This document shows, piece after piece, positions 10,691 to 62,936 of a DNA stretch of 64,000 bases. The DNA is from Oopsacas minuta (lineage: Eukaryota; Animalia; Porifera): assembly GCA_024704765.1 (NCBI GenBank), contig JAKMXF010000325.1, forward strand, positions 163,171 through 227,170, given 5' to 3'. The number at the start of each line of letters is the position of its first letter. The stretch's first letter is position 1. Both the position numbers and the translations under genes were made by a program. A model generated the notes under the pieces. The model did not search any database. It worked only from the letters and a program-made list of their open reading frames with translations, and had not been told where the DNA came from.

Positions 10691-10725
10691 CTGGAATCGA
10701 TTGGGCCCATTTCCGACACCTATGA

Positions 10726-10918
10726 TCGAGTAACCTCTTGTGCCGGATGTCAGAGGTTGTCGCTTTTGGGAAGCTCCGTGTAATGTAATGGGCGAAAAAA
10801 TTTATGATACATGTCAATATTTTTACATTGGAACATGAAGGCCAATTATTCTCATCTCTATAAAAGACAACAATTACAAGTACTGCAGACAGAAATTTAG
10901 ATTATAAGATATAACAAA
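10726..10918 (+). repeat. Interspersed repeat, copy 1 (copy 2 at ~55723-55928, same orientation)
   Basis: Shared TCGAGTAACCTCTTGTGCCGGA...GGGAAGCTCCGT...GAAATTTAGATTATAAGATATAACAAA. Confidence 0.8.
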
Positions 10919-12039
10919 TATCTATACTCTAAATAAATATTTATTAACAACAGTTAAAACGTGTGCGGCCCGCGTCAATATTCTTGTACAAGCTGTCGCC
11001 CTTTGCAAAAATAGGTTGGACACTCCTGTTCTAGTGTAATATCACCCCACTTTGGTTTCAAGAAGACTGAAAGAAGAGTGAGTACGATCAATACCCAATA
11101 GTTATATGTGCTTATGTGGTATTACTAGGATATATAATTTCATTTAATTTGTAATTGTGATCCTAAGTATTAGTATTATTGTACGAGCATCCAAGCCTGT
11201 GCTGTATTTAGGCATTATTACGCCTGTGTACCAATTATAACTAGACCCCTTTCACCCCTAAAAAAAGAATGAAAGGTTTTTACTATTACAACAAATTCAG
11301 ATTGGAATTTTGCGAGCTATTCAAGCTCCTGCAAAATCAACTATCAAATCTTTAATATCGATGCTATCTAGTATTTCATTTCCAATATTTCATGAGGCTT
11401 AGCGTCATAAAACTCAAATACTGGATTTTGTCATAAATTGACTATAATTTTTCTGGTTGAAATACACTCACTAACAGTTCGGGGAAAGTTAGACAATACT
11501 TTAAAGGAAAATTCTTCACAACAATCCTAATATAGTCAGACTAAATACACAAATCCAACCATTTAAGCTGGCATATTCACTAATCCGCGTCCCTCAAGAG
11601 TCAAGAATATCTTTAATGTATCGTCCAGTGCTAGTGCTCACATTTAGGACAAATTCCAGTGTATTTGAGTTTTTGGGAAAATTCTGTAACTATTTAGTAC
11701 AGATTCCAGCTGTCCCTGAGGGCTTAGACTGTACAATGAGCAACTTATAAGATAACAACTTAATACCAGTACTTTATTAAGGGGCGTACGGTCCATAAGA
11801 AACGTGAGGAGGGTATTCAGAGCATGCGAAAACAGTTTTATTAAAATTCTACTGTCTCTACATAGCATTATTATAAAGAAGGTGGAGCTGTATTCAGAGA
11901 ATAGGGTGGATGCATTGTATAAACAAGTCATTGAGATTGATTTAATCCTCAGAATTATTACTAATCAATTAATCATTCTAACACTAAATCAAATATTACC
12001 CTAAAGATCTACAAACTACTAACTAAATTAAGCTAACAA

Positions 12040-13668
12040 CTAATCTTCATCCCAATTCTTATTAGCTGGTGGTTTAGGACCTCCTGCTGCTTTAGACATA
12101 ATAATCTGGTCTATACGTAGAATAGTAGTAGCAGCTTGTGTAGCTAGCTTTATCGCCCATTCCTTGGTAATTAGTAGATCTAGTATCTTCTCAGAGAGAG
12201 CATCTACTATCCCACCGGTCATAACATTAATACCCTGATTTACCTGTCCTTTCTGATGCGCTACCAGGAGTTTTGATAGGATATCGGGGCCTTTGTACCC
12301 TGCATTCTCTGCAATAGCCCGTGGAAGTGATTCTAACGCTTCTGCATACTTCTTAACAGCGTATTGGTCTAATCCAGGACATGTATCGGCATAGGAAGCT
12401 AGTTTCTTAGCTAGCTCTACTTCAGTAGCTCCAGCCCCGGGTAGCAAACGTCCGTCTCGTGTGATTGCTTTGAAACAATTGACTGTATCGTTTATCCCTC
12501 TCTCTACTTCATCAAGGAGATTATCGGTAGCCCCGCGGATTACTAGAGTACCAATTTTACTGTCTCCAACTGCTTGTTCAAAAACTACAACATGAGTAGC
12601 ACCGATCTCTTTAATGTAGACACTCCCGCAACTACCACAATCATCTTGAGTAGGAGTTACTATCCTAGGTAATGCTGTACACCCAACTATGCTACAAATA
12701 CGTCTCATATCAAACTTAGATACAAATCGTAGAGCCATTATGTTGTATTTATTCAGGTAGTGTAGTGAAATATCTCCTACCTTCCCTCCTGACACTACTA
12801 CGTTAACTCCAGCCTCTGATAATGATATCACTAGTTTCTCAACAGCCTCTTCTTCCCCCTGACTATATCCAGATAACTCGTTAGCTGATGTTATTAATAC
12901 GGTGCCTTTAGTCTCAGTACTGGGAGAATCGAAAGGACAGCTGTATACAACTACTTTAGCATTCTCTACAGAGGAGATATCTCCTTCTACGCCACGTTTG
13001 AAAAGCATACCACTGACTTGGAATGAATCTCTTACCCCAGCACCGGGTATCTTCACTATACGTACACAGTCTACGTCAAAATTCTTAGGATTCTCTGGGA
13101 GAATAGAGATACAACAATCAGCAATGAGACCGGAGAGGAAATCTTGATAAGGGAACTGTTTAGAAGCTATTGAAGACCTCAATGCTCTAGAAACAACTTC
13201 TTTATCTCGGATATTCTCAACAGTGAACACAGAAAGATTACCCAGTAGTTCAAGCACACGTTTACAAGCTCTATCATATCCATCTAGTATATCAGAAGAG
13301 GAGAGACCAGCTCTGATCAGCTCTTCCGCGCCCTCCAGCAAACTACCAGCTAACATCAGTACCATGTTAGTACCATCACCAACTTCCTTCTCCATCTGCT
13401 GGGCAGCTATCACCATCAGCTTAGCTGCTGGATGTTGTATTTCTACTTCGTTTACTATTGTTGCAGCGTCTTTTGTTACGAATAACTTTTCTAAATGATT
13501 CACCACCATCTTACTCATGCCAATAGGACCATATGATGTCCTGATCAGGTCACTCAGGTCCGTACATGCCTCGATATTTCGTAGAAGAGATTCGTCAGTT
13601 CCTGAGAAGTGACGAGCTCCATCCTTTAAGAGAGTGGAGAATCCTGATTTAGCTACATGTAGAGCCAT
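12040..13668 (-). CDS. CCT8: T-complex protein 1 subunit theta (CCT8), single exon, 542 aa
   Basis: MALHVAKSGFSTLLKDGARHFSG, YGPIGMSKMVVNHLEKLFVTKDAATI, EVGDGTN, LLPGAGATE, TILRIDQIIMSKAAGGPK. True ATG at 13668; the ORF track extends to a TTG at 13692. Confidence 0.97.
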   Translation of the reverse strand: MALHVAKSGFSTLLKDGARHFSGTDESLLRNIEACTDLSDLIRTSYGPIGMSKMVVNHLEKLFVTKDAATIVNEVEIQHPAAKLMVIAAQQMEKEVGDGTNMVLMLAGSLLEGAEELIRAGLSSSDILDGYDRACKRVLELLGNLSVFTVENIRDKEVVSRALRSSIASKQFPYQDFLSGLIADCCISILPENPKNFDVDCVRIVKIPGAGVRDSFQVSGMLFKRGVEGDISSVENAKVVVYSCPFDSPSTETKGTVLITSANELSGYSQGEEEAVEKLVISLSEAGVNVVVSGGKVGDISLHYLNKYNIMALRFVSKFDMRRICSIVGCTALPRIVTPTQDDCGSCGSVYIKEIGATHVVVFEQAVGDSKIGTLVIRGATDNLLDEVERGINDTVNCFKAITRDGRLLPGAGATEVELAKKLASYADTCPGLDQYAVKKYAEALESLPRAIAENAGYKGPDILSKLLVAHQKGQVNQGINVMTGGIVDALSEKILDLLITKEWAIKLATQAATTILRIDQIIMSKAAGGPKPPANKNWDED

Positions 13669-13773
13669 GTATTTAACCTGGAAAGTAGACAAATATAGTC
13701 AATATATAAATAAGTGCGAGACGAGGTACAAGAAATTTGGGAATTTTAATATAAGTTAAAATTAACACAGTGT

Positions 13774-14067
13774 CAGAGGATTAAGCCCTCCTCATTTTTG
13801 GAGCGCGCTCCCACCTCCGCTCCTTACTCAGAAAAGGAGTGCACTCCGGCTCCCGCTCTAGGACTCCAATCGCGCTCCTTTTCATCCTTTCAGATTTACA
13901 TTATATTTGTATTTTAAGTAATCAGGATTGAAATTAACCATTGTACACATTCGGGAAATTGCTCCACCTTCCGCTCCTGAATCATAAATGGACTGCACTC
14001 CAGGTCCCACTCCTTAAATAGGCGCACCCGAGAGCCTCTCTTAGGAGCGCGCTCCATTAATGCTCTG
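13774..14067. mobile_element. hAT-type MITE (family also at 51415-51740)
   Basis: TIRs CAGAGGATTAA / TTAATGCTCTG; 8-bp TSD CACAGTGT / CACAGCGT; GGAGCGCGCTCC core shared with the 51415 copy. Confidence 0.8.
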
Positions 14068-15320
14068 CACAGCGTACATCCCATTCTTGAATATTGTTGT
14101 TAATATACACTCGAACCGGTTTGGAAAATGCACTGGAATAACTAATATTAAAGAAAAGGTTTTCTACTGAGTGTCTGTAGCCGTTACATAAGCTAGTATG
14201 GGCCAAGAAATATGGGTAATATATTAAGTTAAATACAGCTGACCCAGGATAATTGAAATAAAGTCACGCAGCTTAATTAATAGAGTCACTTCGGGATCAG
14301 GATATTTTGGCCTGATTAAGTGGAATAAAGGTATTAACCCCATTAACAAGAGCAATGTAACAGTATTTGAATGGGTCTGTCTTAGCCAAGTGATCTGATT
14401 AATCGGTGCACAAGCTTAACGGCGGTTGCTCTATTAAGCCGAGTTTACTGTATATTCATTTCTGGAAATTAGCCAAATTAAGCGTTCTCGATTTACCGAA
14501 TATGTTTACCCCATAAATATGATTATCCCTATAGGATGTGTCTGAAACCACTCTGGATTCTTCCAAGAAATTGTCCCGATTAACGGAGTCAACTCTATTC
14601 CTCCAGGATCTACAGTAGATATTGGATATAGTGAGATTGTTGTTTATTTAGATGTGTCTCCTTTCGTGGATATCTTATATAAATATATTAGTATTATTAT
14701 CGTAATAAAATGAATATTTGGAGATTGACATTACAAACAATCGAATAATCTCATACAAATGAAAGAAGTATACACAAGGCTGCGAAACATATACTTATAC
14801 AATATCTATCAGGTTGACTACTAATATCTACCTATTAATTGCTCTTTACTTAATATTAGATGCCGTCTCCCGCCGATGTTTAATAGAAAATCATGGATGA
14901 GAAAAGAGGAATTACTTTATATGGCCTTGAGAATTTAGCTACAAAGTTCGTATTTAGTGGCAGATTTACTACGTATATTCAATATATACCCTATCCCTAT
15001 ATAGCTATATTTATACTAAATAAGTGGCGTCCCTAATTCACGAAACGGAACAGACAAGTTTTCTCGAAGAAATATCGAATTTGTTGCTTGTTGTACATTT
15101 GGCCTTGTAAATCACTGAATATAGTATCGTGACTGGTGTTAAGCATTTGTTTTGACTTTCATGTTGGTGGTAATCTATTTTCTCAATTTTGTACAAATCA
15201 ATAAAATATCTAGTAATACCTCATGAACAACTTTTAGTCAATTTAATCGCGAATATTATATGGACAACCTTTCGGTTGCTACCTCCCTTTAGGCAAGAAA
15301 AGGAGAAATTGTGAGAAGGA

Positions 15321-15490
15321 ACTTTCTAGACGGAATTACTTTAATATTGTAAAAATGGATATAAATTTGACATATTGATTACCATGAAAGTGAAACGTCA
15401 TAACAAATGCTTGACTACTGTTCTTCTACATTAGCTGTGATTTTCAAGGTCAAATATATGTCAGCTACAAATTTGAAATTTCTTTAAGAA
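15321..15490 (+). repeat. Interspersed ~170-bp repeat, copy 1 (copy 2 at ~19864-20027)
   Basis: Shared TTCTAGACGGAATTACTT...ATTGTAAAAATGGATATAAATTTGACATATTGATTA...CAAGGTCAAATAT...CTTTAAGA. Confidence 0.8.
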
Positions 15491-15600
15491 AAACTTGTCA
15501 GTTGCGTTCCGGGAACTATGGAAGCCCTAAATAAGTTCAGAATAATATAACACCGATTCTATACATACTAAAGGTACATACACACAACAGGTAAACTATA

Positions 15601-16080
15601 CTAAGAAAACCCTAATTCCTCTAACACAGCATGTGTACGAGTCTCAGCATCATCTGCCATCATCTCCTGACACTGAATAGCTTTCAAAACATGACTCTTA
15701 CTAGTCTCCTGCACAATACCTCCTAACAACAGCTCATCCAGCATAAAGTAAGCCTTCTCGAAGTTGAATATAACATCTAGCTCGCATACACTACCGAAGA
15801 ACTTATCTAGTAATTCTACAAACCTGTGTATTATCTCTAGAGCTAGCAATTCGTTGTCTTCTTTGTCGATAGCACAACAGAAGAATAGACTAGCATATCT
15901 CCTGTATACTATCTTCTTATCTCTGTACTCAAGGAAGTTACACATCTTAGATTTACGGGTTAGAATAATGGCTATTAATTCTCGTATTATTTTCTTCTTC
16001 TCCTTAACAGGGAGAGCGCTGTACCATCTCTGTAGACGGAGCTTCCCTTGTCTGCTGAATAGGAGCATAAACTCTATCAT
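15601..16080 (-). CDS. AP1S: AP-1 adaptor complex sigma subunit, single exon, 159 aa
   Basis: [74 protein letters not shown]. Confidence 0.95.
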
Positions 16081-16429
16081 TATCTACTGGATAATATAAC
16101 TGTATAGAAGATGAATAGGCATGTATTTGAAATATCAGAGGCAGTTTACAAATTCTGGGAGCCATAGAGTCTAACACATAAGTTTGGGCTGCTAGTCCAC
16201 CCCCAATACATGTATGCTTGAGATACAGTTAATATCACCGAGCTCTCAACTCTCACGATTTCGGCTTTCAACTACTACATACGTATAAACAGATATTGAC
16301 AAATTATTACCATCCATGGTCACTACTGTAATTCAAAAACCTCCTCGTAGTATAAATTACTCATAACAGAGCGTTAACTCGTCGCTTCGCGGTCAACTCA
16401 GCAATTGAAAGTTGACCTGTCCTGTATTA

Positions 16430-16640
16430 TCCAAATTAATGGCCAATATGAAATCTCAGTTTGTCTGTTTGTTCGTTGTCTAGGAAAGGATATACAGTAT
16501 GCTGTCTGAGTTCGAATTTCGCGATTCGAAGATTTAGTTGAAAAATGTATATATGTCACCGAAGATATTGAGAATCCGCGAAATCTCAATTTCGTCGGTA
16601 AGATATAAGCTCCATATGAATATGTAATTGTATTCCTGAA
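16430..16640 (-). repeat. Helitron-like repeat end with (CAAA/CAGA)n microsatellite, related to ~60950-61135
   Basis: The reverse complement ATCCTTTCCTAGACAACGAACAAACAGACAAACTGAGATTT matches ATCCTTTCCTTGACAACGGACAAACAAAC...TGAGATTT at ~61065-61125. Confidence 0.5.
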
Positions 16641-16817
16641 GTGATATATTTTGCTTCTTTCCCAAAACATTAATGCATCTCCATTAACATAAGTATAATT
16701 TTAGAGAAATAAAATGCAGAAATATCCAAAAAGTATACGAATATGAAGTATATTATGTAAGTGTAACAGGGATGCAAAGAATAAATAGATAAAATCGAGT
16801 GAGAATAGTGTATAATA

Positions 16818-19190
16818 CTACAGATGTGTCATGTATTTACTGCCCATCTTTTTAGCTACAGACAGAAAATACAGTTTGTCAGTAGTTTCCTCATAAATGC
16901 GTTTATTGAGATGGAAAATCTCATCATTCTTCTTAGAAAGAGTCCTGCCTAGAGCTGCTATTATAATGATCATAATACTGAATACAGGTAATGCAAGAGG
17001 AGAGTTTATAAAGTCAGCTACAAGCCATTGTACTGGGTTAGTGTTGTTACTACCTTGAAGAGGAATACTAACCCGTGTTAGGGAGGAGAGAGTATTGAGC
17101 TGGTCAGTGAACAGAGAATATACAGTTGTTCGCCCTCTGAATGGCGAGCAGCCTGCACTGGGAGTGAAGCCAAATATAGGCAGAATTAGGAGTAGAAATG
17201 TAAAAGCGAACATTAGAATCAAAATAAAGTTGTAGAATAGGAATGAATTTGCTGAATAATATATCTGTGAGACATCAAACTTTATAAAACTCAGAGTGGA
17301 GAATGACATCACAATGAATAGTAAAATGAAACCTAAAAATCCCATTAAACTTAACCAAGGACAGAAGAAGAGCCCGAGCCATAGCAACGCTTGTATGTAA
17401 ATGATATTCATTACACGTGTGGGAATGTTAAAATTCGGTCCTTCAATTACAAAGTCAATAGCTTTCATTATTTTATTGGGAATACATTTCCAAGTGTGTA
17501 ATTCTCCAAGTACAAGCGTTGAAATGATACGTCGTAAAGCTAGATAGATCGCATAAACGAATATAGAAGCTATCAACGCGAACAGAGCTTGTCGATAGAA
17601 CACCTGACCATATTGAGTTTCCCAGCAGTCCTCACCACCTGTACTCAGTATATACACACTCAATAGATCAATTGATATAGCTGTTATAGCGACTAGACGT
17701 ACTAACACAATACGAATCAAGGTGATGAATACCTGCACACTCTGTTTATGATAGAACTCTAGCTTAGAAATGAGAGGGAAGATGAAATCTAAAACAGCCT
17801 GCACGAGTAGAACTATTACAGGAGATATTATTGTACGCCAGCTCTCTGTAGATGCACACTCATCACTGATAATGTTTAGAAAGTTACATAGCGGAGATAT
17901 AACTATAAGAGAACAGCCAACTAATAGCAATATAATTGTCAGGGACCAGGTGAATGCTCTCCATAGATAAATCAACAGGAGATACTTCCATGTCCTAGTG
18001 TCATGTCTCTCTACAAACTCACGATGCATCTCTGTCAAGCTGATAAGATTAGCTTTCAACTTTCTCTTTGCAGAAATGGGTTTAGTAATGTTATAGTCCC
18101 AAGAACTGAAAATGAAAGCAGCGAATTGAAGACCAGGTTCTAGCTTAAGGCCTGAAAATAGCAGTAACGAATCTCCCACCCAGCGAGCCAGTAATATAGT
18201 AACAACAAGCAGAATAGTAAAGTAAGCGTAGAGGTAAGCTGATGGCATGTGGTAGCCGTATAAAGTTGTACTAGCAATAGGATTAATGTGTTCTGATGAG
18301 TATCGACCGATAAAAACAGGAGAATTCGTGAACCAACCTCCACCAGTTATTATAGGTATCACGAAATCATCGAAAACACAAGAAATCTCAGCTTTATTCT
18401 GTGTAGCAACACAAGTATCGATAATGTCTCTAGTGGAAGCGAGCGAGTAATCGCTAGGATTTTCTCCCAATAATTGAGGTACTATAACAAATGCCCCCTG
18501 CAATAATAGAATAATGAAATTCATCCAAATCAAATGCTTGAGTAAGAGGAAATATGACGCAATAGCAGAGCCAAATGTATTCTCTATCTTCTTCAATGCA
18601 TACTTTGAGATATCAAAAAAGGAAATTACATTTCTGATTGAGCTCTTTACCATTTTGAGCCTAACTTTCCTTAGTTTCTCGTTGCTATCATCGATATATC
18701 TCCTGAAGCCTGATCTGCTATGTGGTGTGTATCTCCTACGTAACTTTATGCCTTGAGTGTATGTATGATCTTCCATCTTGCTGGTAGCTCGTCTCAATTC
18801 TATACTGACATCTTGTGATGAGACTAGAGATTTTCTGTGGTGAGGCTCTTCAGTAATGTTACTTAAACGAGAGACCTGGGGTTCTCTGTTCTCCTCAAGG
18901 TGAGCTAACTCATCGTCATCTATATTCACTAATCTCATTACGTTTCTAGTGAGGCGTCTATGTATTGGCTCTTTGTCCTCGTCTAGACACAGGAAGAGAT
19001 CCATTGTTTTTGCATGTTTGGACTTAAACAATGCTTTTCTCACATTCTTCAGATCAGGACTACGTTCTTCATAATGTGTAGCCTTGCTAGGAGCCTCCAA
19101 TAGACATTCCAAAAGAGCATCTGGCGATTTTGATAAGCTTGGATTGAGAGTACCTACAATTTCGCATTCATCATTATTACAGAATGCCAT
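16818..19190 (-). CDS. TMC: Transmembrane channel-like (TMC) protein, single exon, 790 aa
   Basis: KKIENTFGSAIASYFLLLKHLIWMN, GGGWFTNSPVFIGRY, FIFSSWDYNI, CWETQYGQVFYR, FNIPTRVMNIIYIQALLWLGLFFCPWL, PSAGCSPFRG; about 10 hydrophobic segments. Paralogue not assignable. Confidence 0.93.
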   Translation of the reverse strand: MAFCNNDECEIVGTLNPSLSKSPDALLECLLEAPSKATHYEERSPDLKNVRKALFKSKHAKTMDLFLCLDEDKEPIHRRLTRNVMRLVNIDDDELAHLEENREPQVSRLSNITEEPHHRKSLVSSQDVSIELRRATSKMEDHTYTQGIKLRRRYTPHSRSGFRRYIDDSNEKLRKVRLKMVKSSIRNVISFFDISKYALKKIENTFGSAIASYFLLLKHLIWMNFIILLLQGAFVIVPQLLGENPSDYSLASTRDIIDTCVATQNKAEISCVFDDFVIPIITGGGWFTNSPVFIGRYSSEHINPIASTTLYGYHMPSAYLYAYFTILLVVTILLARWVGDSLLLFSGLKLEPGLQFAAFIFSSWDYNITKPISAKRKLKANLISLTEMHREFVERHDTRTWKYLLLIYLWRAFTWSLTIILLLVGCSLIVISPLCNFLNIISDECASTESWRTIISPVIVLLVQAVLDFIFPLISKLEFYHKQSVQVFITLIRIVLVRLVAITAISIDLLSVYILSTGGEDCWETQYGQVFYRQALFALIASIFVYAIYLALRRIISTLVLGELHTWKCIPNKIMKAIDFVIEGPNFNIPTRVMNIIYIQALLWLGLFFCPWLSLMGFLGFILLFIVMSFSTLSFIKFDVSQIYYSANSFLFYNFILILMFAFTFLLLILPIFGFTPSAGCSPFRGRTTVYSLFTDQLNTLSSLTRVSIPLQGSNNTNPVQWLVADFINSPLALPVFSIMIIIIAALGRTLSKKNDEIFHLNKRIYEETTDKLYFLSVAKKMGSKYMTHL

Positions 19191-32575: not shown

Positions 32576-34357
32576 TCATAGTTTAGAATCTCTCTTCTCT
32601 TTATTCCCATCTTGATTAGAATCAGGTGAAATAACCAGTTCATTTTTCTCCTCCATCTTATCAGCTCCCTTCTCTATCTCTCCTACCTTTGTCTGCATTT
32701 TAGATTGTACCTCCTCACCTTCTAACTTAGGTTGCTTAGCGCTGGGTTCTAACTCACCAGTAGATCCTCCCTCTGTAGCTGCAGGTTTCTCCTCCATCTT
32801 ATCAGCTCCCTTCTCTGTCTCTTCTGTCTCTGTCTTCGTTTTAGATTGTATTTCCTTATCTTCTAACTTAGGTAGCTTAGCGTTGGGTTCTAACTGACTA
32901 CTAGCATCTCCAGCTGTTGTTTCTTGTAAGGTTTCAGGCTTATCCGCCTTACTTATACCCTCATTTTCAGCTTTGTCCTTATCCAGCTGCTTGGTGATTA
33001 TTCCAGCAGGAGCTGTAACAGCTGAAGTGAGAATAGGAACACCTGTGCTAGCATGGGGTAATAAAGATTTTGGTTCTGAGACAGGTGGAGTACTCTCCTT
33101 ATCTACCCTATCCTGTGTATCTGTACTGGTAATGGGAGGAGGAGGTGTTGGGAAGAAAAGACATGACAATTCAGAATATATATCATAATCCACCTTAAGG
33201 AACACACAAAATATAACACGCTGCATTTGAGTCTTAGCATACTCATTCTCTTCAAACCATTTACGCACTATTTTAAGTGCCGTAAACGCAGCATTAAAGT
33301 TGGGATATCCGTATATACCAGTAGAGACACAGCAGAAAGCTATAGATTTAATATTATGCACCTTAACAAGATGTAAACACTCTTTGTAGCAAGATTCTAG
33401 CTCCATACGCCTCTCACCAATTGGACCTACAGTATGAATAATGTATTTAGCAGGGAGTCTGTGACCGCCGGAAATTTTGGCCTTTCCAGTATCACAACCA
33501 TTTAGAGCATAGCATTCATTATATAGAGATCGGCCAGCAGCGTTATGAATAGCTCCATCTACTCCTCCCCCGCCCAGGAGAGATTTGTTAGCAGCGTTAA
33601 CTATCGCATCTATCTCCAGTTTCGTAATGTCTCCTCTCCAGATAGACACCTTGTTATTTATAGCAGGATCAGCTGTTTTAGGATTGTTTAGTTCACTATT
33701 GCTCTTGCAATTCTTTGCTATTTGAAATTCAGGCCAGGTTTCAATGTCTTTCAATTGTAGGTAGTGTGACCCGCAGCTGTAATACTTACGTTTATCAGCA
33801 ATTGACATATTTTCAAAGAATTCTCTGTTTTCTGTGGGAGCTGTAGCAGAACGTAACAAGTACCATGGTTTTTCTACTACTTTACTGGAGCTTTTATTAG
33901 ATTTAGGATTTTGTTTTACTTCATCTGTAGGTGTATTCTTCTCAGGTTCTTTCTCGTTTGAAGATTCCATATCTACATTCTTAGATTCTTCTCCAGTCTC
34001 TAGTTGCTGAGACTTAGCAGAATCAGTTCTAGCTTCATCTGTAGTTTCCAAAATAGGAGTAGATTCTCTATCTTCTCTAGAAGTAGTGTCTTTATCAGTT
34101 TGTTTCTCTATATTGGTAGTAGCAGAATCTGTGTTAGTTGTAGACTCATCAGTTTTATTAGTATCTGCCTTATCTTCTCTACTTTCATGGGTAGAGTCTA
34201 TCGGAGAAGATGAACTTGCCATCCTAATTGCTTGTGAATGTAGTATTGATGGAGAATTATAATTATATAGATGTGTAGATAACCTGCTAGTCAGTGATGA
34301 TGATTTACAAACAGTTGTGAGTTTCAAAGTAGTTCTTAATGCACGTAATGATAGCAT
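32576..34357 (-). CDS. MACROD: MacroD-type mono-ADP-ribosylhydrolase / O-acetyl-ADP-ribose deacetylase, single exon, 593 aa, with predicted mitochondrial presequence and acidic extensions
   Basis: WRGDITKLEIDAIVNAANKSLLGGGGVDGAIHNAAG, LPAKYIIHTVGP, SIAFCCVSTGIYGYP, RVIFCVF; R/S/T/L-rich acid-free N-terminus. Confidence 0.93.
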   Translation of the reverse strand: MLSLRALRTTLKLTTVCKSSSLTSRLSTHLYNYNSPSILHSQAIRMASSSSPIDSTHESREDKADTNKTDESTTNTDSATTNIEKQTDKDTTSREDRESTPILETTDEARTDSAKSQQLETGEESKNVDMESSNEKEPEKNTPTDEVKQNPKSNKSSSKVVEKPWYLLRSATAPTENREFFENMSIADKRKYYSCGSHYLQLKDIETWPEFQIAKNCKSNSELNNPKTADPAINNKVSIWRGDITKLEIDAIVNAANKSLLGGGGVDGAIHNAAGRSLYNECYALNGCDTGKAKISGGHRLPAKYIIHTVGPIGERRMELESCYKECLHLVKVHNIKSIAFCCVSTGIYGYPNFNAAFTALKIVRKWFEENEYAKTQMQRVIFCVFLKVDYDIYSELSCLFFPTPPPPITSTDTQDRVDKESTPPVSEPKSLLPHASTGVPILTSAVTAPAGIITKQLDKDKAENEGISKADKPETLQETTAGDASSQLEPNAKLPKLEDKEIQSKTKTETEETEKGADKMEEKPAATEGGSTGELEPSAKQPKLEGEEVQSKMQTKVGEIEKGADKMEEKNELVISPDSNQDGNKEKRDSKL

Positions 34358-36984: not shown

Positions 36985-38514
36985 CTAATCATTCTCCACT
37001 TCAACTACATACTGAGGCTTAACATGGTATGCTCCTAGAGTATACTGCTCTCTTATCTTAGTGTAGAATATTCCACCCAATATCTCCTGAGAGGTGTTAG
37101 AATTCGCGAGAATAGTAATAACCTCAAATCTAGAATAGACTAACTCCTCCCCTGATATACCCTCATTGCTAATAAGATACTCAAGAAAACCTGGACAATT
37201 CCGCATACTCTCTTGTCCCCATCTCCAACATGCAACAGCACGACACACAGAGAATACACTGGTCTGTAGTTCTGAGAACGGCTGCTTCATGACCAGGAAC
37301 ATTCTCTTTAACGGATCACTCCCGATACAATTGAACCAAGAGCGTGTCTGTTCGTGGTAGAACTCAATATCACTCATCCAACTCCGCTGCTGTATTAGAG
37401 CAGAGAACATACTGAGTATCTGAACTCTCCTAGCACTGCTACTGCTAGATAACTGACTGGCACAGATACACAAGGCCTCGTGTATACGAGAGTTCTTATT
37501 AAGTAAGACACGACCTTCCTCCAGAGCAGAGAGATGTGTCAGAGACTCCAGGAACACTTTCATGTCCCTCTCTTCCCCAGCCTCTAGGAGTGAAAACAGA
37601 TGTGAGATTAGCGGTTCATAGTACATATTTCCTTCAGTAGCAGTGTGTGGTAGATGAATAAGTGAGAAGAAGAACACGATAATGTCGTGGCGTACCATCT
37701 CCAGAGCAGGGTCTGTATTCTCTGCAGTTGCTAGCTGTAACAGACGTGATAATACTCCGTTACTTCTGAAGAAAGCATACCCATCAGGATGCTGACAGAA
37801 AATTGACAGGGTGTCAAGATAGCACAGGAAGCTGAGGGGATCTTCTGAGCTAAGACGCTGTGAGAGGACAGACAGGAGACCAGAGTGTTTACAGTACTCA
37901 AATGCTTGTGGAGATAGCGCGGATATACGTGATATAGCTGTAAGCACACGAATAGCTGAGATGTCATCCTGTAGCTGTGATAACAACCCGGCTATTAGAG
38001 GAGATGAATCAGAGAAGAGAATAGATAGAGCTGTCTGATGTCCTGACACGCTGATTAGTGTATTAGTTATATTCTCTACAAGAGCTAGATCGTTATGAGA
38101 GAATAGAGTAGGGATAGAGGATAGGAGATATGTCGTTAGGTATGTAGAGAGAGATACAGGATCATGCTTAGATACAAACTGTAGGAACTCACATACTAAC
38201 TCTACCTGTAGGGGAACAGCGTTAGAGATAGCTGTCTCTAGGTGAGAGGGGGGAAGGAGAGAAGAGAGTGTGGGGTAGAGAGGAAGTATCAACAGACGTT
38301 TGAATATTGATATGATTAACGAGCTCTCTGATTTAGAAGTTCTAGAAGAAAGCAATAATAGATCTGTTACTAATAGCTGTATGACTTCACTAGGTAATGA
38401 CAGGAGTGTAATCTGTCCAGAAAGAATAGAGGAGTGAATGCTCTCTAGAGAGTCTATACGTCTAGGAACTGATTCAGTAGTTGACATGTCTTCTAGGAGA
38501 GACTCAAGATTCAT
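36985..38514 (-). CDS. PSMD5: 26S proteasome non-ATPase regulatory subunit 5 (S5b/Hsm3 assembly chaperone), single exon, 509 aa
   Basis: ARM/HEAT-like Leu-rich helices, EDPLSFLCYLDTL, MKQPFSEL, WRWGQESM...PGFLEYL and C-terminal LGAYHVKPQYVVEVE, resembling the PSMD5 GPYYVKP motif. Confidence 0.85.
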   Translation of the reverse strand: MNLESLLEDMSTTESVPRRIDSLESIHSSILSGQITLLSLPSEVIQLLVTDLLLLSSRTSKSESSLIISIFKRLLILPLYPTLSSLLPPSHLETAISNAVPLQVELVCEFLQFVSKHDPVSLSTYLTTYLLSSIPTLFSHNDLALVENITNTLISVSGHQTALSILFSDSSPLIAGLLSQLQDDISAIRVLTAISRISALSPQAFEYCKHSGLLSVLSQRLSSEDPLSFLCYLDTLSIFCQHPDGYAFFRSNGVLSRLLQLATAENTDPALEMVRHDIIVFFFSLIHLPHTATEGNMYYEPLISHLFSLLEAGEERDMKVFLESLTHLSALEEGRVLLNKNSRIHEALCICASQLSSSSSARRVQILSMFSALIQQRSWMSDIEFYHEQTRSWFNCIGSDPLKRMFLVMKQPFSELQTSVFSVCRAVACWRWGQESMRNCPGFLEYLISNEGISGEELVYSRFEVITILANSNTSQEILGGIFYTKIREQYTLGAYHVKPQYVVEVEND

Positions 38515-44220: not shown

Positions 44221-45141
44221 TTATTTCCATGATAAGGTTGGAGAAACTAGCTTCTCCATATTTTTCTGCCAACAAACTTCAGAAAAGTGAGTCTCTAAAA
44301 GTATGGGGTTAGTAGTCATGCAATTCCTCAGCCGTTTCTTCGCACCACCCCATGTACTCTCAACTGTTTGCGTATGTACACCTGTATTAGGGTCAACAAA
44401 ATTGAGACTATGGTTTACGGTGAGATGCTGAAAACTTGCAGCGGGGATAGAATTATACGATGCCCATTCGTCAGAAAGTATGGTAGTGCCCGGAAGAATA
44501 TATCTCTGGATGAGAGGGACTAATGTTGCAGCCGACCTGTCTTGAACAGGTATCATAAAGATATCTTTTGTCTCTCTATCTATTCCTCCAAATACCCATT
44601 GACCTGATAGCATACGACCTCTTGAATACTTTCGATATCCAAACTTTGATTCATCTATTTCTACAATATGCCCAGGCCCTCCAATTGGTTGAGGATTGAC
44701 TAAAAATTCCTCAACACATAGGTCTCTGAGGAAGTTCTTCCAGTCTGTTATAGTATGCTCTCCCCACCCTAGATTCTTGTGTAAAAAGGCAGTAGTTTGC
44801 ATATTATCGGTCCAGAAATAGAGAAATTCTACCAACTCAGTTAACGGTATATGAGCACCTTCAAAGAATGAGCCAATCCTCATCGAAGCGAATTTCTTGC
44901 ATGACTTTTCCGGGCACCTCCACCCCTTTCCATCTGCAAAACCTGAAAATGTTCCGGGTCTCATAATTCTACCGCATTTGCACATCATCCCGGTAGCTAA
45001 AAGTCCGTTACTTTTGAGCCATGCTATACAAGTATCTTCATCAATAGTGATATTACGAAAAAGTTGTTTTAAGGTCATTTCTTCAATAACTGGAAATATT
45101 GTAGGAACCAGCAGAGGTTGAAACGATGGAGCAACTGCCAT
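44221..45141 (-). CDS. Merlin/IS1595-family DDE transposase; a 1-nt deletion in an A5 run (44261-44265) replaces the C-terminus, and the corrected stop would be at 44198 (314 aa)
   Basis: Zn ribbon CKC...WRCPEKSC, VEIDESKF, WVFGGIDR, ILSDEWASY, VNHSLNFVDP, HTQTVESTW. The other frame gives KYGEASFSNLIMEIRKHYPVI*. Confidence 0.92.
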   Translation of the reverse strand: MAVAPSFQPLLVPTIFPVIEEMTLKQLFRNITIDEDTCIAWLKSNGLLATGMMCKCGRIMRPGTFSGFADGKGWRCPEKSCKKFASMRIGSFFEGAHIPLTELVEFLYFWTDNMQTTAFLHKNLGWGEHTITDWKNFLRDLCVEEFLVNPQPIGGPGHIVEIDESKFGYRKYSRGRMLSGQWVFGGIDRETKDIFMIPVQDRSAATLVPLIQRYILPGTTILSDEWASYNSIPAASFQHLTVNHSLNFVDPNTGVHTQTVESTWGGAKKRLRNCMTTNPILLETHFSEVCWQKNMEKLVSPTLSWK

Positions 45142-55949: not shown

Positions 55950-57000
55950 ACATATACCAAATGAATATTCAAATTCCCCTCTCCCATGACCTTCCCTCCC
56001 TATTGTATGAATTAGCTGACCTGAGGGTGATGGTATATTGATTTTATTAAGGTGAAAAACAGTGCTGAGAAAATTCCCTCAGGCATCTAAACAAAAGAAT
56101 GATGGAGAAGCCATCGTATGACCTAACTCACGAGAATTGCACAAGTTCAACCTGAGTCCATGATCCACTTCTTGAGAAGAAGTGAACACAGTTGTGACCG
56201 AGGTCGAGGACTACTACACAATTTGGAGTATGTTTAATATCTTTAGGACATCTTAGTTGTTGAGTGCCTAAACATTTCAGAAATCCGATCTTTTTAGAGA
56301 AGATTGAAACTCTCTGTGATTGTTACAATCAGCAACCCACACGTCTCCAATATGGTCGACACAGAGTACGAATGGTTGATTTAGCTCTCTGTCTCTTGAT
56401 CCTTCAGTACCAGTTCGCTTTACTTACATGGCGAACTGAAGCAGAGTGTGAAGATGTTTGTCCGTGATGAAGATGTGATATTAAGTAACTGCAATGCCAT
56501 ATTGCCTCTCGCGTACGCCTTGTCCAAATCTTTAAAAACTTCTCTATAAACGATAAACCTTGAATGTGACTATTCTGGAAATCAGCTATGTAAATATATT
56601 GATTGAATTCATCTAAAGCTATACCTCTAGACTTTAGCTCATTATTGGCATTACCTTTTTTCCAACAGCTAGGAGTGGCTGCTTTATAGTAGAGTAGCCC
56701 AACACCCAGTCCTTCACTTCCCCGAATACAACTATTCGACTTTGCAGTTGAGATAGCGTCGGAGACGAGAAGAAGGGCTGGTGGAGTTGGGTTGGAGTCT
56801 CCAATTTTTGATACGCTTTTGGTAGAGGTCAGTGGCCTGTTGATAGAATTCTTTGTTCTTGTTAACTTTGTGACTTAACTCAATCAAATGTTGTTGTTTT
56901 TGCCCGTTCTTCCATGGTTGACTAACGGATAGTTTCCTTTGAGAAATATTCCTATTTCATATCTAGCAGTTTGCTTAGTAGAGCGTCCCATCTCGCGACT
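55950..57000 (-). pseudogene. Second NHL-repeat (TRIM-like) pseudogene with coiled-coil N-terminus
   Basis: RWDALLSKLLDMK*EYFSKETIR, KQPLLAVGKKGNANNELKSRGIALDEFNQYIYIADFQNSHIQ and EGEFEYSFGIC; many lesions. Confidence 0.65.
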
Positions 57001-57959
57001 ACATGCTCAATTAAGAAATCGTACCTATCTGAGATTACCTTGCAACAGATTCGAATTGTAGACTAACTCGTGTATGTATGTGTTGAATGGTTGCCATTTG
57101 TATTCATTTGATTGAAATTTATACCGAATATCGCATACATTTAAATTCCTATATCATAGGTCCGGATAGTTAATAGTTGTATATATTTTGGATTTTGTAA
57201 ATAATTATGAAACCCGAGAATACCAATTTTATGTTATTTGCTTCTATGTAATTTAGTTTTCTTGGTTGTAGTTAGTTGTGCTTACCAGGCTTGACTCATT
57301 AGAATGAACTAGTTTTGATTTCCCCAAGAAATGTATTTAGAAAATTTTCGCATTCAACACGAGCATAAATGTACATAAATATATTCATGATGAATTTAAG
57401 AAGATATTTTATCATTTATATGGTGTCCAAAGCGTCTATCAAATCTGATAGACGATTTGGGCACCATATAATATATTCTTACTTGGTTTTGACATTTTTG
57501 GCTATTTTAACAAGGAAAAGTCAATAGTGTTTAATGCTACATAGTAATTTTCCGAGAGGGAATATTTATTTTGGGCAAATACTATACGACACCGAATAAT
57601 GCATGAGATAAAGAGCTCGTACTTAGGGTACTTCCAAATTATGGAGTTCGACTGAACAATGGTGAAAGATGAGGAAATGACTTTGCATAAGAGAAAAGGG
57701 TCAAATATCAGGATTTTGTTCACACGTATATATTGAACTTAGTAATATACGTTCAGTAAATTTGTTTACAAAAAGATTATTAAATACTTTTAACCAGAGC
57801 GTTACTTTAATTATATTCATACTAGTCAGAGAAATGACACAGAAAAATCACTAATCATACCTAACAAATAGTGAGGAACTAAAAAGAGCAATACAACATT
57901 ACCTACGTTGAAAAAAAGGAAGAGTTAATTAATCAAAAACAGAAAATACACTTTTGGTT

Positions 57960-60545
57960 TCATTCGCAGAAACCAGTTTCTTCAATCCATGGAAGCTTGA
58001 ATTTATTCAATAAATCAGATGCACTTTTCCTATTGTTGGTTCCCAGAGAACAAACAACTATGCTAACCATATCGGAGAAATCAACTGCAGAAAGCGTACC
58101 CAATCGATCATAATTCGATTTTTTCAGGAGTTTGTCCGGATTCGTAAGTGCGTCAGTCATCATTGATCCCAATCCGTTGTCGAAATCCAGCATAAATGCA
58201 GCACTCGCAACAACACATTCCGAGATATCACCTGAAGAACCATCATTAAATGCAGTAGTACCTAAGCTTGAAATAGTCGAGAGATCAGACAGATCCTGAC
58301 ACCAGCCATCACAATAGATCAAATTACCAATTACCTTTTGTCCGAGGTAAGTAGCATAGCCTTCCGAAAACGCAAAATTAGGAGAGATTGGTGATCCATC
58401 ATGGGATCCACTTCCTGTTATAACTGCACCTGTTATATCCATTATTAAATGGCCAAATTCATGCAACAATACAGATTCATCCCACTCATCAGGATCCATA
58501 GCATTACCACCCACTGATATTCCATTTTCATCATAATATGATATCGGATAATTTGTGTCCTTTGCGTACTCCCCATGCTCCCAATTTGCCTTCCATGGAT
58601 AATCTGATGTCTTGCCGCCATATGCAATGTATAGAGGTAGCATACGATCTAAGGTTACCATAATGTTGAATGCTCCAGAACCAGATGACAGAGGAATAGT
58701 GACATGTCTAACCGCTGATTCTTCATTATTCGGGTATATTACGTCATTGGAACGATATATGTGAGTGTCGCCATAGTGATCAGTCACATCGATCTTATTA
58801 TTTGAAGATAGGAATTCAAGATTAAGAGGAGAATCGATATTGTCTGGTTCATAGCTAAAGGAGAATAATCCTCTTTGTGAATTGGTAGCATCTAGTCCAA
58901 CCTGAGATGTCCCATATATGCCTCCAAATGCATCTACTATTCTGACGATTGATCCCAACGGATTCGCACTGGACATAGGCGTAACGTAGCTGATTGTACC
59001 ACTAACTAAGAATTGTTTACAAGTTGTAGTATATCTTAAAACTTCTCTTCCTGAACCAAGACCTCCTGAATCTGCTTCCGAAGGTAAAAACGAACCAGAT
59101 ATTGTTTGAGACATGTCACAGCCGTCACCCTCTATTAATACAACAAAGTTAATTGTATTTGTGACGTCGCAGGCAGAGAAGAGATCAACCCTGATAATGT
59201 ATTCTCCTGAAATAGCTAGCTCATAATAGACATTTTCAGTTTTTCTATGATCAATTTCACAATCCCCATTTGAATCCAGATCAAGAAAACCTCGCTGCAT
59301 ATCTGATGCTCTTTGTCCATAATAGATTTCTTCATTGTTAGGATCCATCACGTGTATATCGAGATCTGCTTCTCTATCCCAAGTTAGTCTAACATGAAGA
59401 GTTCCTGTCTGTGATGTAGAAGTTGTAGTTGTGATCCTTTTTATTTGTCCAAAGTCTCCTTCCATATCCTGCAGACGAAGCAACATTTCTACATGACCTC
59501 CACTTGCTATGGAGCCACTAGGTAGCGTAAGGACGAAAACTATTTGTGAACCTGTCGTTTTATCGGATGCCCTACGTGAATTCGAATTTCGCTTCTGAAG
59601 TGATGCAATTGGAATGATAAAATGCTGTCCAAATCCCTCGAAGCCCACGAGTAGATCACTTGCTAGAGAATTTTCGTCTAGTTCGAACGGTATCTCTACA
59701 CTTTGACCAGTCGTTATAGAGACTTCAAAATTTTCCACTAGTATCAGGTTTAAACTGTTTATGTTCGTAGCGACATTAGATGGAAAACTTCTCATATCAA
59801 CAACACCTTCTTCAATCATAAATGGATTGGTTGGGCCTAATTGGAAGAATATTATAATTCCAGGAATTATTAGAGTGTACTCATCAGTGCTATATACGAC
59901 TATTGGTATTGTATATAATTTTTCATCTGCTACAAGATTTGAAGGAATATTTTCTATTGCCGTCAAAGTAGATCCTTGTATACTGGATGAATTTGAAATC
60001 ACAGTTTCTCCAAAAATTGACGAGTAGTTCACTGTAAAATAAGCTGGATTTCCTGAAACTTCCAAAGAAATCGTTAAATCCATACCAGGATAGATAACTT
60101 GAGGGTAATTAGCGCTAATTAACATCATTTTTGGGTCATTTACTAGCACTGTAATTTCTCCGATACCTCTCCTATTATTTACAGACTTTGCTGTTACAAC
60201 TATGTGGTGTTCTCCATCTTCTAAGCCACTCGTAGATATTTCCAAGTTAGTAGGGAGCATTTTGAATGAATACTTTTGAATTCCATCTAGATAGACGAGA
60301 ACGTTTCCCTCTAATTTTATCCCAGTTGGTAAAGACAAGAGTAGATCAATATAGCCATTCGTAAATTCCTCTCCTGGGTTTGGTGTAGTCAGAATGATGA
60401 CAAAATTACCTGATTCAGATTTCGCTGTACTGCCCTTGGAAGCTGAGACACCAATTGCTATGGCTATAATTAGTACTAATCCAAGCACTGCAATTATTGT
60501 GCATATCGTTGCTATGAGTAGAATTATTTTCATTTTCTTCTCCAT
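57960..60545 (-). CDS. Type II membrane-anchored zincin-like metalloprotease with bacterial-type Ig-like and YfaP/DUF2135-like domains, single exon, 861 aa
   Basis: N-terminal signal anchor; LDG...LEDGEHHIVVTAKS Ig-like domain; LHVRLTWDREADLDIHVMDPNNEEIYY...GFLDLDSNGDC; DPDEWDESVLLHEFGH...GSH...AFSEGYATY. First ATG at 60545. Confidence 0.85.
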   Translation of the reverse strand: MEKKMKIILLIATICTIIAVLGLVLIIAIAIGVSASKGSTAKSESGNFVIILTTPNPGEEFTNGYIDLLLSLPTGIKLEGNVLVYLDGIQKYSFKMLPTNLEISTSGLEDGEHHIVVTAKSVNNRRGIGEITVLVNDPKMMLISANYPQVIYPGMDLTISLEVSGNPAYFTVNYSSIFGETVISNSSSIQGSTLTAIENIPSNLVADEKLYTIPIVVYSTDEYTLIIPGIIIFFQLGPTNPFMIEEGVVDMRSFPSNVATNINSLNLILVENFEVSITTGQSVEIPFELDENSLASDLLVGFEGFGQHFIIPIASLQKRNSNSRRASDKTTGSQIVFVLTLPSGSIASGGHVEMLLRLQDMEGDFGQIKRITTTTSTSQTGTLHVRLTWDREADLDIHVMDPNNEEIYYGQRASDMQRGFLDLDSNGDCEIDHRKTENVYYELAISGEYIIRVDLFSACDVTNTINFVVLIEGDGCDMSQTISGSFLPSEADSGGLGSGREVLRYTTTCKQFLVSGTISYVTPMSSANPLGSIVRIVDAFGGIYGTSQVGLDATNSQRGLFSFSYEPDNIDSPLNLEFLSSNNKIDVTDHYGDTHIYRSNDVIYPNNEESAVRHVTIPLSSGSGAFNIMVTLDRMLPLYIAYGGKTSDYPWKANWEHGEYAKDTNYPISYYDENGISVGGNAMDPDEWDESVLLHEFGHLIMDITGAVITGSGSHDGSPISPNFAFSEGYATYLGQKVIGNLIYCDGWCQDLSDLSTISSLGTTAFNDGSSGDISECVVASAAFMLDFDNGLGSMMTDALTNPDKLLKKSNYDRLGTLSAVDFSDMVSIVVCSLGTNNRKSASDLLNKFKLPWIEETGFCE

Positions 60546-60669
60546 ATTCAACTTTTATTTCTGCCTTTGTTTTGTTACTATAGTGTCATAGCTGTTTATT
60601 AATATAAATAATAATAATTTTGCTACATTTCAATGCATTGGGGACTATACAATACAAGAACATAGCAAG

Positions 60670-61135
60670 CTAATGAATACTGATCCCGCCATTCTCAGTA
60701 CGATTACCCCAGTACAGTAGTTGAAAGTATGATTCTACCTCAATTTTGAAATTTTTTTACTTTATACGCCTAAAAGTAAACAAATATTCACAATATATTG
60801 TTTACAATACCATATTCGGACTCAGCATACTCGAATACCCCAGCATAGTCGTTGTAAGTATGATTCTACATCAATTTTGAAATTTGTTTACTTTATATTC
60901 ATAAAAACAACAATAAATTTACCTTGTATTATTAATCCAAAAGTGTGAAAATCGGATTCAGCATGTTCGATGTATTTAGTGAAGTTTTATTGAATTCTAT
61001 TTACTTCCTTGATAAACACGATAAATACATAGTTATGCGATAATTTCAAAATTGCATACCTTAAATCCTTTCCTTGACAACGGACAAACAAACAAACAGA
61101 CAGACAGACAACAATTGAGATTTAATAATATAGAT
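60670..61135 (+). repeat. Helitron/DINE-like repeat with ~130-bp internal tandem subrepeats and (CAAA)n(CAGA)n tract
   Basis: TATGATTCTAC.TCAATTTTGAAATT occurs at ~60729 and ~60860; microsatellite at ~61085-61110. Confidence 0.55.
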
Positions 61136-62936
61136 ATACTAGTTAGAGGAAATATTTTAATAGGGAGTGGCATCACAATATATATATAACGACGAATCTC
61201 CAATGGCCACTAAGTTATATGATTTGGCTACAATTGTTAATCCAAAGGCGCTGTGATAAGGAAATTTCTTAAATACAAGGAACATCATGAAGACCCCCCA
61301 CAATATGTGAAAATAACCCCAAAATAATATTTCATAGATATTTTCCCCTGATATCAATTACATATAGAGCGCTAAATACAATAATAATGAGATTAGCCGA
61401 TTAGAGGAAAATGAAATTTTCTCCACAATACCAGGAAACACCTTATAGAAATCCATCGAATCACCGAAAAGGGTCTATTCTAGTCACTATAGGCCCTAAT
61501 TCTTCAATCATAATTGAACCCCACACAACTTTCAATGAGGAATTCGAATAAGTTACTTAGAAGAATTCGAGACCTCAGTTAAGGCAGACTAATTTTCAGG
61601 CAAGGGCCTTAAGAATGTGGCTGGTGTTGAAGATCAAATTGTTCACTCACTAACCTTAATGTAGGATATCCCTAGATGAAATCATAATGGATCTTCGCGC
61701 AATGCATTCTCGGATCGAGTGTAAAGCAAAATTCTCATCTGGGACATTTAACAAAGATCCTGACATCAGTAGAATAGATTCTAACGAAATTTGAGGTTAC
61801 TTTATTGTAGATTTTACACCGAAACCGAATACCATAAACACCATACATAAACAACATATTATGAATTTTTCTCCATTTAGATTTATTGGCACCCTTTTGG
61901 CACCCCTGGGCTCGTTTAAATTAAACTAAATTCTGAATATTGAAAACAACATCAATAGTATTAAATCTCAAATGTTGTTTGCCTGTTTATTTGTTCGTTG
62001 AATATCTCGAGGTGCAATGCGCCGAGTTCATCGCGAAGCGGCGAGCCATATACTCAAAAATATACTGGGGGGCAATTGCCCCCCCCAGTTTTCAACATTG
62101 GAAAAACTGAAATTAATTAGTAAACAAGAACGAATATAATTTTTTGGAAATTCTACCCGGATGAAGGCGTATTAGCTAGCATGGAATTACGCGCTTCTTC
62201 TGCATCATCCACCTTTCCAACACATTATTAAAATTGATTGCTTTCACAATTTCTCTATTCAAGGAAATTGTCATCAAATCACTTGCTCCAGTGCTATCAA
62301 GACTAGATCTAGCCCAACTTAATATTCTATTAATAACATTAAAGCTTATGTCGACTGTTGCAGTGCTAACAGGTGTGGTTTTGGAGATCATAATTAACTT
62401 CTTTAATTGAGGGTAAATGTATCTAGTATGTGTACTGTGTAGTATTCTACGTGTATAATGAAATCAAAAACTAGCTCTGATAAGTTCAATTTTGCCCCCC
62501 AGTACTTTTTGAAGAATCGGCCACTGGTATATGGATTCGTATTCTAAAATATCTCAATTTCCTATGAGAAATTTTTGAATATCTGACTTTACGCATCATA
62601 CTGAGAAATGATTATGGATAGCTTAATTCTACTAATGAGTTTAAGTTAGTATAGTAATATTCAAACCCAAGATGGGCTTAATTATATTTGGTTAGATAGC
62701 AATTTTCCGATAGTGATCCTACCCAGGTATAGGAATCAAACAAGATTAAATTTGAGAAAATTATCCTTGATTGAGTTACAAATTTCACTTGGTTACCAAT
62801 GTTGTCCCAATTAAAGCCGAGATTACTTACAAAATCCACATAGCAGCTCCAGTATTACCACAGAAGGCATTAAATATTTTTGGTTGGCACATGGATAATA
62901 AAAATTATTATTTCTACTACTTTTTAACTCTACCGA

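Follow-up and report, generated by a model that had tools for sequence, protein, structure and literature searches.

The gene and its product

The window analyzed in this work is a stretch of 64,000 nt from contig JAKMXF010000325.1 (340 kb; assembly GCA_024704765.1) of the glass sponge (hexactinellid) Oopsacas minuta, and all nucleotide coordinates below refer to it. Its minus strand holds, at 57960-60551, an uninterrupted open reading frame (ORF), 863 amino acids (aa) long if it starts at a TTG and 861 aa if it starts at the ATG at 60545, whose product we interpret as a membrane-anchored zinc peptidase, probably derived from a bacterial surface lipoprotein. The database gene model for this protein, P0001, begins at residue 5 of the 861-aa ORF, and a search for a second copy of the gene inside the window found none. 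The features of the gene and of its predicted product are:

57963..60545, minus strand: complete coding sequence of 861 aa, without intron; stop codon at 57960-57962; the same as database protein P0001 from residue 5 onward
60447..60527, minus strand: predicted signal-anchor transmembrane (TM) helix, aa 7-33, after the Lys-rich tail MEKKMK; Kyte-Doolittle window mean up to 3.09; helix at aa 3-33 in the AlphaFold2 model
aa 34-46: short linker, of low confidence in the AlphaFold2 model
59841..60407, minus strand: two predicted Ig-like beta-sandwich domains, aa 47-135 and 141-235; AlphaFold2 model and profile match to PDB 3pdd
59421..59804, minus strand: predicted third beta-rich domain with one helix, aa 248-375; AlphaFold2 model
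59016..59408, minus strand: predicted DUF2135/PPC-like jelly-roll, aa 380-510; AlphaFold2 model, hhalign to YfaP, and Pfam PPC/DUF2135 matches of relatives
58746..59012, minus strand: predicted beta-sandwich packed on the peptidase domain, aa 512-600, carboxypeptidase-regulatory/MG-like; AlphaFold2 model
57963..58733, minus strand: predicted thermolysin-fold zinc peptidase domain (alpha/beta), aa 605-861; model confidence (predicted local distance difference test, pLDDT) 93
58359..58463, minus strand: putative active-site segment with H695-E696-x-x-H699, H715 in GSGSH and E728 in AFSEG; conservation and model

The first-pass annotation of this DNA had proposed a clean ORF of 861 aa that encodes an N-terminal TM anchor, an Ig-like domain, a YfaP/DUF2135-like block, and a HEFGH zinc motif followed by GxH and AFSEG. 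The ORF, the anchor and all three motifs were found as it had described them. The Ig-like domain is supported by a match of the family profile (A1) to Ig-like modules of PDB 3pdd (E 1.1e-5) and by the modelled beta-sandwiches. An AlphaFold2 model of the whole protein, built from a 61-sequence alignment, reached a pLDDT of 91.7 and a predicted template modelling (pTM) score of 0.89; so high a pTM suggests a rigid stack of domains, not beads on a string. Two AFDB matches (A0A271J2G9 and A0A2E0TCQ9) align over about aa 240-509. Others run from about aa 507-512 through the peptidase, one of them named 'Carboxypeptidase regulatory-like domain-containing protein', and weak matches to CarboxypepD_reg and bMG3 came from the homologue P0048. 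Searches of Pfam, NCBIfam and PDB sequences with the single protein returned nothing meaningful, and matches to a 3-oxosteroid dehydrogenase (E 0.0025) and to PorU (E 0.13) were put down to chance. Foldseek of the whole model against the PDB was dominated by proteins with Ig arrays (titin, contactins, complement) and was uninformative; the catalytic domain was then modelled alone (pLDDT 93.1).

The proposed YfaP/DUF2135-like block stood as a remote relationship and failed as a Pfam assignment. Searched whole and in pieces (including aa 380-520), the sponge protein gave no DUF2135 match at E ≤ 10, and so did not reach the gathering threshold of PF09906. DUF2135 is matched weakly in 21 of 56 relatives (best E 3e-4) and PPC in 26 of the 56. 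Compared by hhalign with E. coli K-12 YfaP, the 56-sequence domain profile (A3) aligned at a probability of 97.8% (E 7.7e-13) over 99 columns, covering YfaP 141-241. Judged by this profile comparison, aa 380-510 are homologous, remotely, to the C-terminal domain of YfaP. The LHVRLTWD stretch begins at aa 383 (59376-59399), and the conserved features of the jelly-roll are W389, D394, D396, LDLDSN and four Cys (429, 459, 476 and 509). Many bacterial proteins of ~300 aa have the YfaP-like domain on its own.

A predicted thermolysin-like catalytic domain

HEFGH occupies aa 695-699 (58449-58463), GSGSH ends at H715 (58401-58415), and AFSEG spans aa 725-729 (58359-58373). Each of H695, E696, H699, H715 and E728 is conserved in 90% or more of 61 sponge and bacterial sequences, and every sponge sequence aligned retains the active-site motif. 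DSSP on the AlphaFold2 model places HEFGH within helix 690-705 and E728 within helix 722-739, six residues in. The zinc site of thermolysin is formed by H142, H146 and E166, the Glu lying 20 residues after the second His in a NExxSD-like motif; the position of E728 in the second active-site helix presumably resembles that of E166.

Structural comparison with VIA-align matched the isolated catalytic domain to thermolysin with a Z of 17.4 (root-mean-square deviation 3.4 over 230 of 287 residues), to M36 fungalysin with a Z of 15.9 and to LasB with a Z of 15.3; the next best matches were M1 aminopeptidases, with Z of 10-12. Foldseek returned many M4 structures with TM scores of 0.5-0.6, and mycolysin and bacillolysins from AFDB Swiss-Prot. 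As modelled, the catalytic domain has, specifically, the two-lobed fold of thermolysin. Its predicted arrangement is that of a gluzincin (clan MA(E)), with HExxH on one helix and the Glu ligand on the next, the loop between them being nine residues longer and carrying the conserved His. The link to thermolysin is structural only, because the peptidase-domain profile found no solved peptidase among PDB sequences; its one match, a rubredoxin, was set aside as chance. M4 models matched none of 57 family members, and two of the 57 matched M36 weakly (E 0.007). For a propeptide of the FTP/PepSY type there is no Pfam match in aa 1-600, where the model has Ig-like beta-sandwiches.

In this site, zinc would be held by H695, H699 and E728, and E696 would act as the general base, while H715, on the loop that joins these two helices of the active site, would probably help to stabilise the transition state. 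From fold and conservation we infer a zinc endopeptidase of the thermolysin type, without an M4-type propeptide. A different reading of the same protein would make it a non-catalytic surface protein, that is, an adhesin or receptor binding, for instance, bacteria through its Ig-like and jelly-roll domains, the zincin site being vestigial or ligand-binding. Four or five beta-sandwich domains do make up 65% of the ectodomain, the lack of a propeptide is unusual for a potentially harmful protease, and a whole bacterial subclade has lost HExxH, keeping the scaffold without catalysis. Yet the conservation of the five active-site residues across the family, and of the motif in every aligned sponge sequence, argues for selection on catalysis, and we consider a purely adhesive protein unlikely.

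The subclade lacking HExxH consists of L024-L028, L030, L031, L034, L037-L039, L049 and L055, from Myxococcota and other bacterial metagenome-assembled genomes (MAGs), several of them labelled 'Deltaproteobacteria'. Its members are, to judge by their sequences, probably pseudo-peptidases with a retained scaffold.

A predicted signal anchor in place of a lipobox

The only strongly hydrophobic stretch in the 861-aa protein is aa 7-33. All sponge copies examined have a basic tail and then a hydrophobic helix of 23-28 residues (~27 in the window protein), whereas the bacterial homologues carry at the same place a lipoprotein signal with a lipobox Cys (e.g., ...LQAC-GGG or ...VVAC-GGP), which agrees with the earlier description of the anchor as eukaryotic in type. 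The positive-inside rule, the length of the helix, which exceeds that of a cleaved signal peptide, and Cys residues consistent with disulfides together point to a type II protein that crosses the membrane once and has its catalytic domain on the outer side; the conserved Cys 429, 459, 476, 509, 832 and 860 fit an extracytoplasmic protein. The six-residue Lys-rich tail would then lie in the cytosol, aa 7-33 would cross the membrane, and the ectodomain would be turned to the cell exterior or to the inside of a vesicle or phagosome. A bacterial lipobox, and with it a lipid anchor, would have been swapped for a eukaryotic signal-anchor helix, so that the enzyme would be tethered to a membrane in both hosts.

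Relatives in bacteria, sponges and other eukaryotes

We scanned 1.84 billion cluster representatives with HMMER (E ≤ 1e-3), and 2700 of them matched; after the sponge paralogues, the best matches were full-length proteins at 25-32% identity. The best AFDB cluster match is named 'Lipoprotein' (Q2I6L5) and superposes with TM scores of 0.68/0.62 over aa 34-844. A scan of GTDB species genomes, seeded with eight close bacterial sequences (A4), gave 226 confirmed loci. The full-length ones come mostly from Myxococcota or 'Deltaproteobacteria' MAGs, which fits the link to myxobacterial lipoproteins named in the first-pass annotation. Other loci were found in Pseudomonadota and Acidobacteriota, and domain-only matches in Gemmatimonadota and others. 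Among the bacterial genes, P0041 lies beside MacB/FtsX/ABC/RND genes, P0035 is tightly spaced beside a PEP synthase, and P0048 is on a contig of 4.8 Mb. The alpha-2-macroglobulin operon context of E. coli yfaP, which had been brought up for comparison, has no counterpart at the loci examined. Nor need a domain fusion be invoked, as had been suggested: the bacterial lipoproteins carry the whole architecture from Ig-like domain to peptidase, and only the N-terminal anchor differs.

Within glass sponges we found ~30 family proteins at 52-69% identity, encoded on large AT-rich contigs (0.3-1.5 Mb), of which several carry at least two members and one has a zf-TRAF neighbour gene. O. minuta has a tandem pair of paralogues. 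The pair, LOD99_3361 and LOD99_3359, lies on one strand of contig JAKMXF010000255.1 (L090:2205-4792 and L090:10001-12571, in that order). Glass sponges have several paralogue lineages, including these tandem copies and a family member from Vazella pourtalesii known as a Trinity transcript.

One copy of the tandem pair, LOD99_3361, has a frame change near codon 708, just past HEFGH, and in the annotation a 65-base 'intron' covers this change. Identity to LOD99_3359 is 98.6% in the last 148 aa of the protein and 87% in the first 707, which suggests gene conversion, plus either a young pseudogene or an indel of the assembly.

Among the named hits of the family, the only eukaryotes are Oopsacas, Vazella and Mastigella, the rest being bacteria; most database hits come without taxonomy, and no direct search was made of genomes from other classes of sponges. 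The Mastigella eilhardi (Archamoebae) sequence, P0047, is a transcript (EukProt EP01105) with six isoforms. A further eukaryote-like sequence, P0056 (L089), is a transcript-like Logan contig of 2858 bases from SRR12264491, with very short flanks beside its ORF. Both P0047 and P0056 have a signal peptide and a Cys-rich N-terminus.

Unrooted trees were built on aa 375-861. A quick LG+G4 tree (84 rows) recovered the 18 sponge sequences as monophyletic with a support of 100. A careful LG+C20 tree (46 rows) placed the sponge clade (100/100) inside a 100/100 clade with bacterial lipoproteins, other bacterial clades falling outside.

Composition, read support and expression

The protease gene has a GC content of 0.384 and a GC content at third codon positions (GC3) of 0.294, against a GC3 of 0.285-0.40 for host ORFs in the window and of 0.51-0.80 for the GC-rich genes of the bacterial homologues; the host-like AT richness noted in the first pass was measured and stands. 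Relative synonymous codon usage (RSCU) in the gene correlates with that of the pooled host ORFs at r = 0.65, versus -0.27 to -0.60 for the bacterial homologues. L008, a gene of the orthologue group from another sponge assembly, gives an RSCU r of 0.66.

Sequencing runs X1 and X3, which share their sample code with X4, show flat, single-copy depth across the gene. One short-read contig of 5394 bases spans 56300-60712, from 1.6 kb past the stop codon through the whole gene, with zero differences and at the depth of the flank. We conclude that this is a genuine nuclear gene of O. minuta and not a contaminant.

In run X4, depth over 57876-60633 is 2500-17000, versus 48 in the 3' flank (a 50- to 350-fold difference; the kind of run is not on record). 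Contigs of run X5, which has another organism code and belongs to another study, are ~97% identical to the window and cover the gene body at 57866-60008 and a separate stretch of the flank at 56613-57174, with almost none in 57285-57865; the kind of this run is not on record either. Both patterns are transcript-like, and the gene is likely expressed. A read skip joining 58147 to 60879 was rejected as a splice: one side is 28 bases long and lands in a high-copy repeat, and the joint is also present in DNA-like runs. Ten coding differences from run X5 are visible (6 non-synonymous and 4 synonymous); they are confined to the variable C-terminal tail and too few for use.

Origin of the family

We conclude that the family probably goes back to a surface lipoprotein of bacteria. 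Horizontal transfer, most likely from a donor resembling Myxococcota, would have brought the gene into glass sponges before the lineages sampled here separated, with duplication afterwards. Horizontal transfer itself is well supported; the named close relatives are mostly Myxococcota. The earlier view of the gene as a bacterial-style modular metalloprotease and a candidate for such a transfer is sustained by the full-length bacterial lipoproteins and by the nesting of the sponge clade in the tree.

Several observations tell against this account of an acquired, membrane-bound enzyme. As for catalysis, no Pfam or NCBIfam peptidase model matches the protein (Pfam to E ≤ 10); the spacing from H699 to E728 is 29 residues instead of the 20 of thermolysin, in a motif of the form A(F/W)SEG; and HExxH is missing from some of the bacterial proteins, so that the family is not made up of enzymes throughout. 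The ectodomain has two N-glycosylation sequons only. The RSCU correlation of the gene with the host is below the 0.81-0.90 seen from host to host; the lowered match could be a residual foreign signal, or could stem from amino-acid composition or expression level. The evidence for expression is indirect, because the records do not say of what kind these sequencing runs are. Lastly, P0047 and P0056, both on long branches, join the sponge clade at 89/94 in the LG+C20 tree, so the history may involve more than one eukaryote; the grouping could reflect independent transfers, a transfer between eukaryotes or long-branch attraction. In addition, the tree has no root, and placing one on the eukaryote stem would turn the bacteria into a single clade; the direction of transfer is therefore read from the distribution of the family and not from the branching order.

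These last two points are also what favors vertical inheritance with loss nearly everywhere except in glass sponges and Mastigella, or a transfer from eukaryotes to bacteria. Against either stands the spread of the family over several bacterial phyla (the 2700 representatives and 226 GTDB species loci), with just three named eukaryotic genera, and the position of the eukaryote group inside a fully supported clade with lipoproteins, other bacterial clades being outside. The eukaryote branches are long, and their union may be an artifact of long-branch attraction; vertical descent would moreover need massive loss across eukaryotes. We regard both scenarios as improbable, and retain transfer from bacteria to an ancestor of the sampled glass sponges. 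Bacterial contamination or a chimeric assembly, in which an ORF of a sponge-associated bacterium was mis-joined to sponge DNA, might be suspected from the bacterial nature of all close non-sponge relatives, the lack of an intron and the high-copy repeat ~90 bases upstream of the ATG (repeats being possible mis-join sites), but it is very unlikely, as the first pass had argued, and already largely refuted by the host-like GC3 and codon usage, the mismatch-free contig bridging flank and gene at single-copy depth, the ~30 paralogues and orthologues on large AT-rich contigs, one with its zf-TRAF neighbour, the eukaryotic-style signal anchor instead of a lipobox, and the homologue in the Vazella transcriptome.

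Neighbouring genes and repeats

A 14-3-3 gene lies near the protease gene on the same contig. Elsewhere in the window, eukaryotic genes that each form a single long ORF on the minus strand encode CCT/TCP-1 (12043-13692), TMC (16821-19190), a Macro-domain protein (32579-34357) and PSMD5 (36988-38514). The first-pass annotation had called the gene intronless in proposing a transfer. As an argument for transfer this falls: because these neighbouring host genes are also single ORFs, and O. minuta has 1.59 introns per gene (genome paper, PMC10280926), an intronless protease gene says nothing about origin. The same annotation's host-type flanking repeats were recovered, at very high depth, in two blocks. 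The first is:

60634..61224, strand not assigned: high-copy interspersed host repeat upstream of the gene; contig depth 3e4-4.5e5 versus 57-253 in single-copy flank, four runs

A second high-copy block lies at 61816-62200; contig depths over the two are 10^4-10^5, with a summed depth of up to 4.5e5. The repeat element begins ~90 bases upstream of the protease ATG, and 49 bases of one block match the other in inverted orientation. Inspection by eye around the gene for a polyadenylation signal and a promoter gave nothing decisive. Remnants of mobile elements are also present in the window: an ORF at 44224-45141 (minus strand) that matches the ISXO2-like DDE transposase domain (PF12762) at E 3.8e-17, and an ORF at 1913-2647 (plus strand) with Tc3-type helix-turn-helix domains.

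Possible role and significance

Glass sponges feed on bacteria and have unusual, syncytial tissue; to our knowledge, hardly any of the enzymes that they use in digestion and defence are known. As the likeliest role of the protein we would suggest, with low confidence, that it breaks down proteins of bacterial prey or of matrix, either outside the cell or in phagosomes; a part in digesting or resisting bacteria is speculative. Gluzincins with the thermolysin fold and bacterial genes that animals have domesticated are both kinds already known. We searched the literature on this protease family and on DUF2135/YfaP and found no description of the family and nothing relevant. The word 'horizontal' is absent from the Oopsacas genome paper (PMC10280926), and both 'horizontal' and 'HGT' are absent from the Aphrocallistes genome paper.

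In its fullest and most tentative form, which may well fail in one part or another, our proposal is of an unclassified family of clan MA(E), defined by HEFGH-x15-H-x12-E, without a propeptide and with Ig-like, DUF2135-like and beta-sandwich domains. It would have passed from Myxococcota-like bacteria to the glass-sponge ancestor, and also to an archamoeba, either independently or from eukaryote to eukaryote; it would have exchanged its lipid anchor for a TM helix, split into at least six paralogue lineages and come to serve as a surface or phagosomal protease of the syncytial tissue against bacteria. Should the transfer from bacteria hold, glass sponges would offer a clean and datable example of how an early-branching animal domesticated a surface protease of bacteria, and would show how a eukaryotic signal anchor can take over from a prokaryotic lipid anchor with tethering kept. 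The results also point to a large family of bacterial lipoproteins (~2700 cluster representatives) with a thermolysin-fold domain outside Pfam, apparently unstudied.

Comparison with known systems

The closest systems are the bacterial lipoproteins themselves (Q2I6L5; P0033-P0041 and L009 from Myxococcota MAGs), which have the same order from Ig-like domains to C-terminal peptidase, the same conserved Cys and the same active site. They differ in having a signal peptide with a lipobox Cys and GC-rich genes, where the sponge protein has a basic tail and a helix of ~27 residues. E. coli YfaP shares with the sponge protein the DUF2135 pattern LxWD...D.DLHV..P.G.E.YY...G.LD.D. However, YfaP is a protein of 258 aa without a peptidase domain, encoded in the operon of yfaS (alpha-2-macroglobulin), whereas in the sponge the domain is internal to a protease, has two extra Cys pairs and stays below Pfam thresholds.

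With the thermolysin-like peptidases (M4 thermolysin, aureolysin and LasB; M36 fungalysin; M5 mycolysin) the sponge protein shares, as modelled, the catalytic fold, with its HExxH helix and the Glu on the next. It departs from them in its low identity (10-16%), the absence of a match to the Pfam models Peptidase_M4, M4_C, M36 and Mycolysin, the extra conserved His (GGxH), the longer spacing to the Glu, five extra N-terminal beta domains, and a predicted membrane anchor where they are secreted; no FTP/PepSY propeptide was detected by Pfam. In general outline its predicted layout resembles that of neprilysin/ECE (M13) and aminopeptidase N (M1), in which, as is generally known for M13, a short N-terminus in the cytosol is followed by a signal-anchor helix and then by a large ectodomain bearing HExxH and a Glu. 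The sponge protein has no sequence relationship to these animal enzymes, a different domain composition and, on the reading favored here, an origin as a bacterial lipoprotein.

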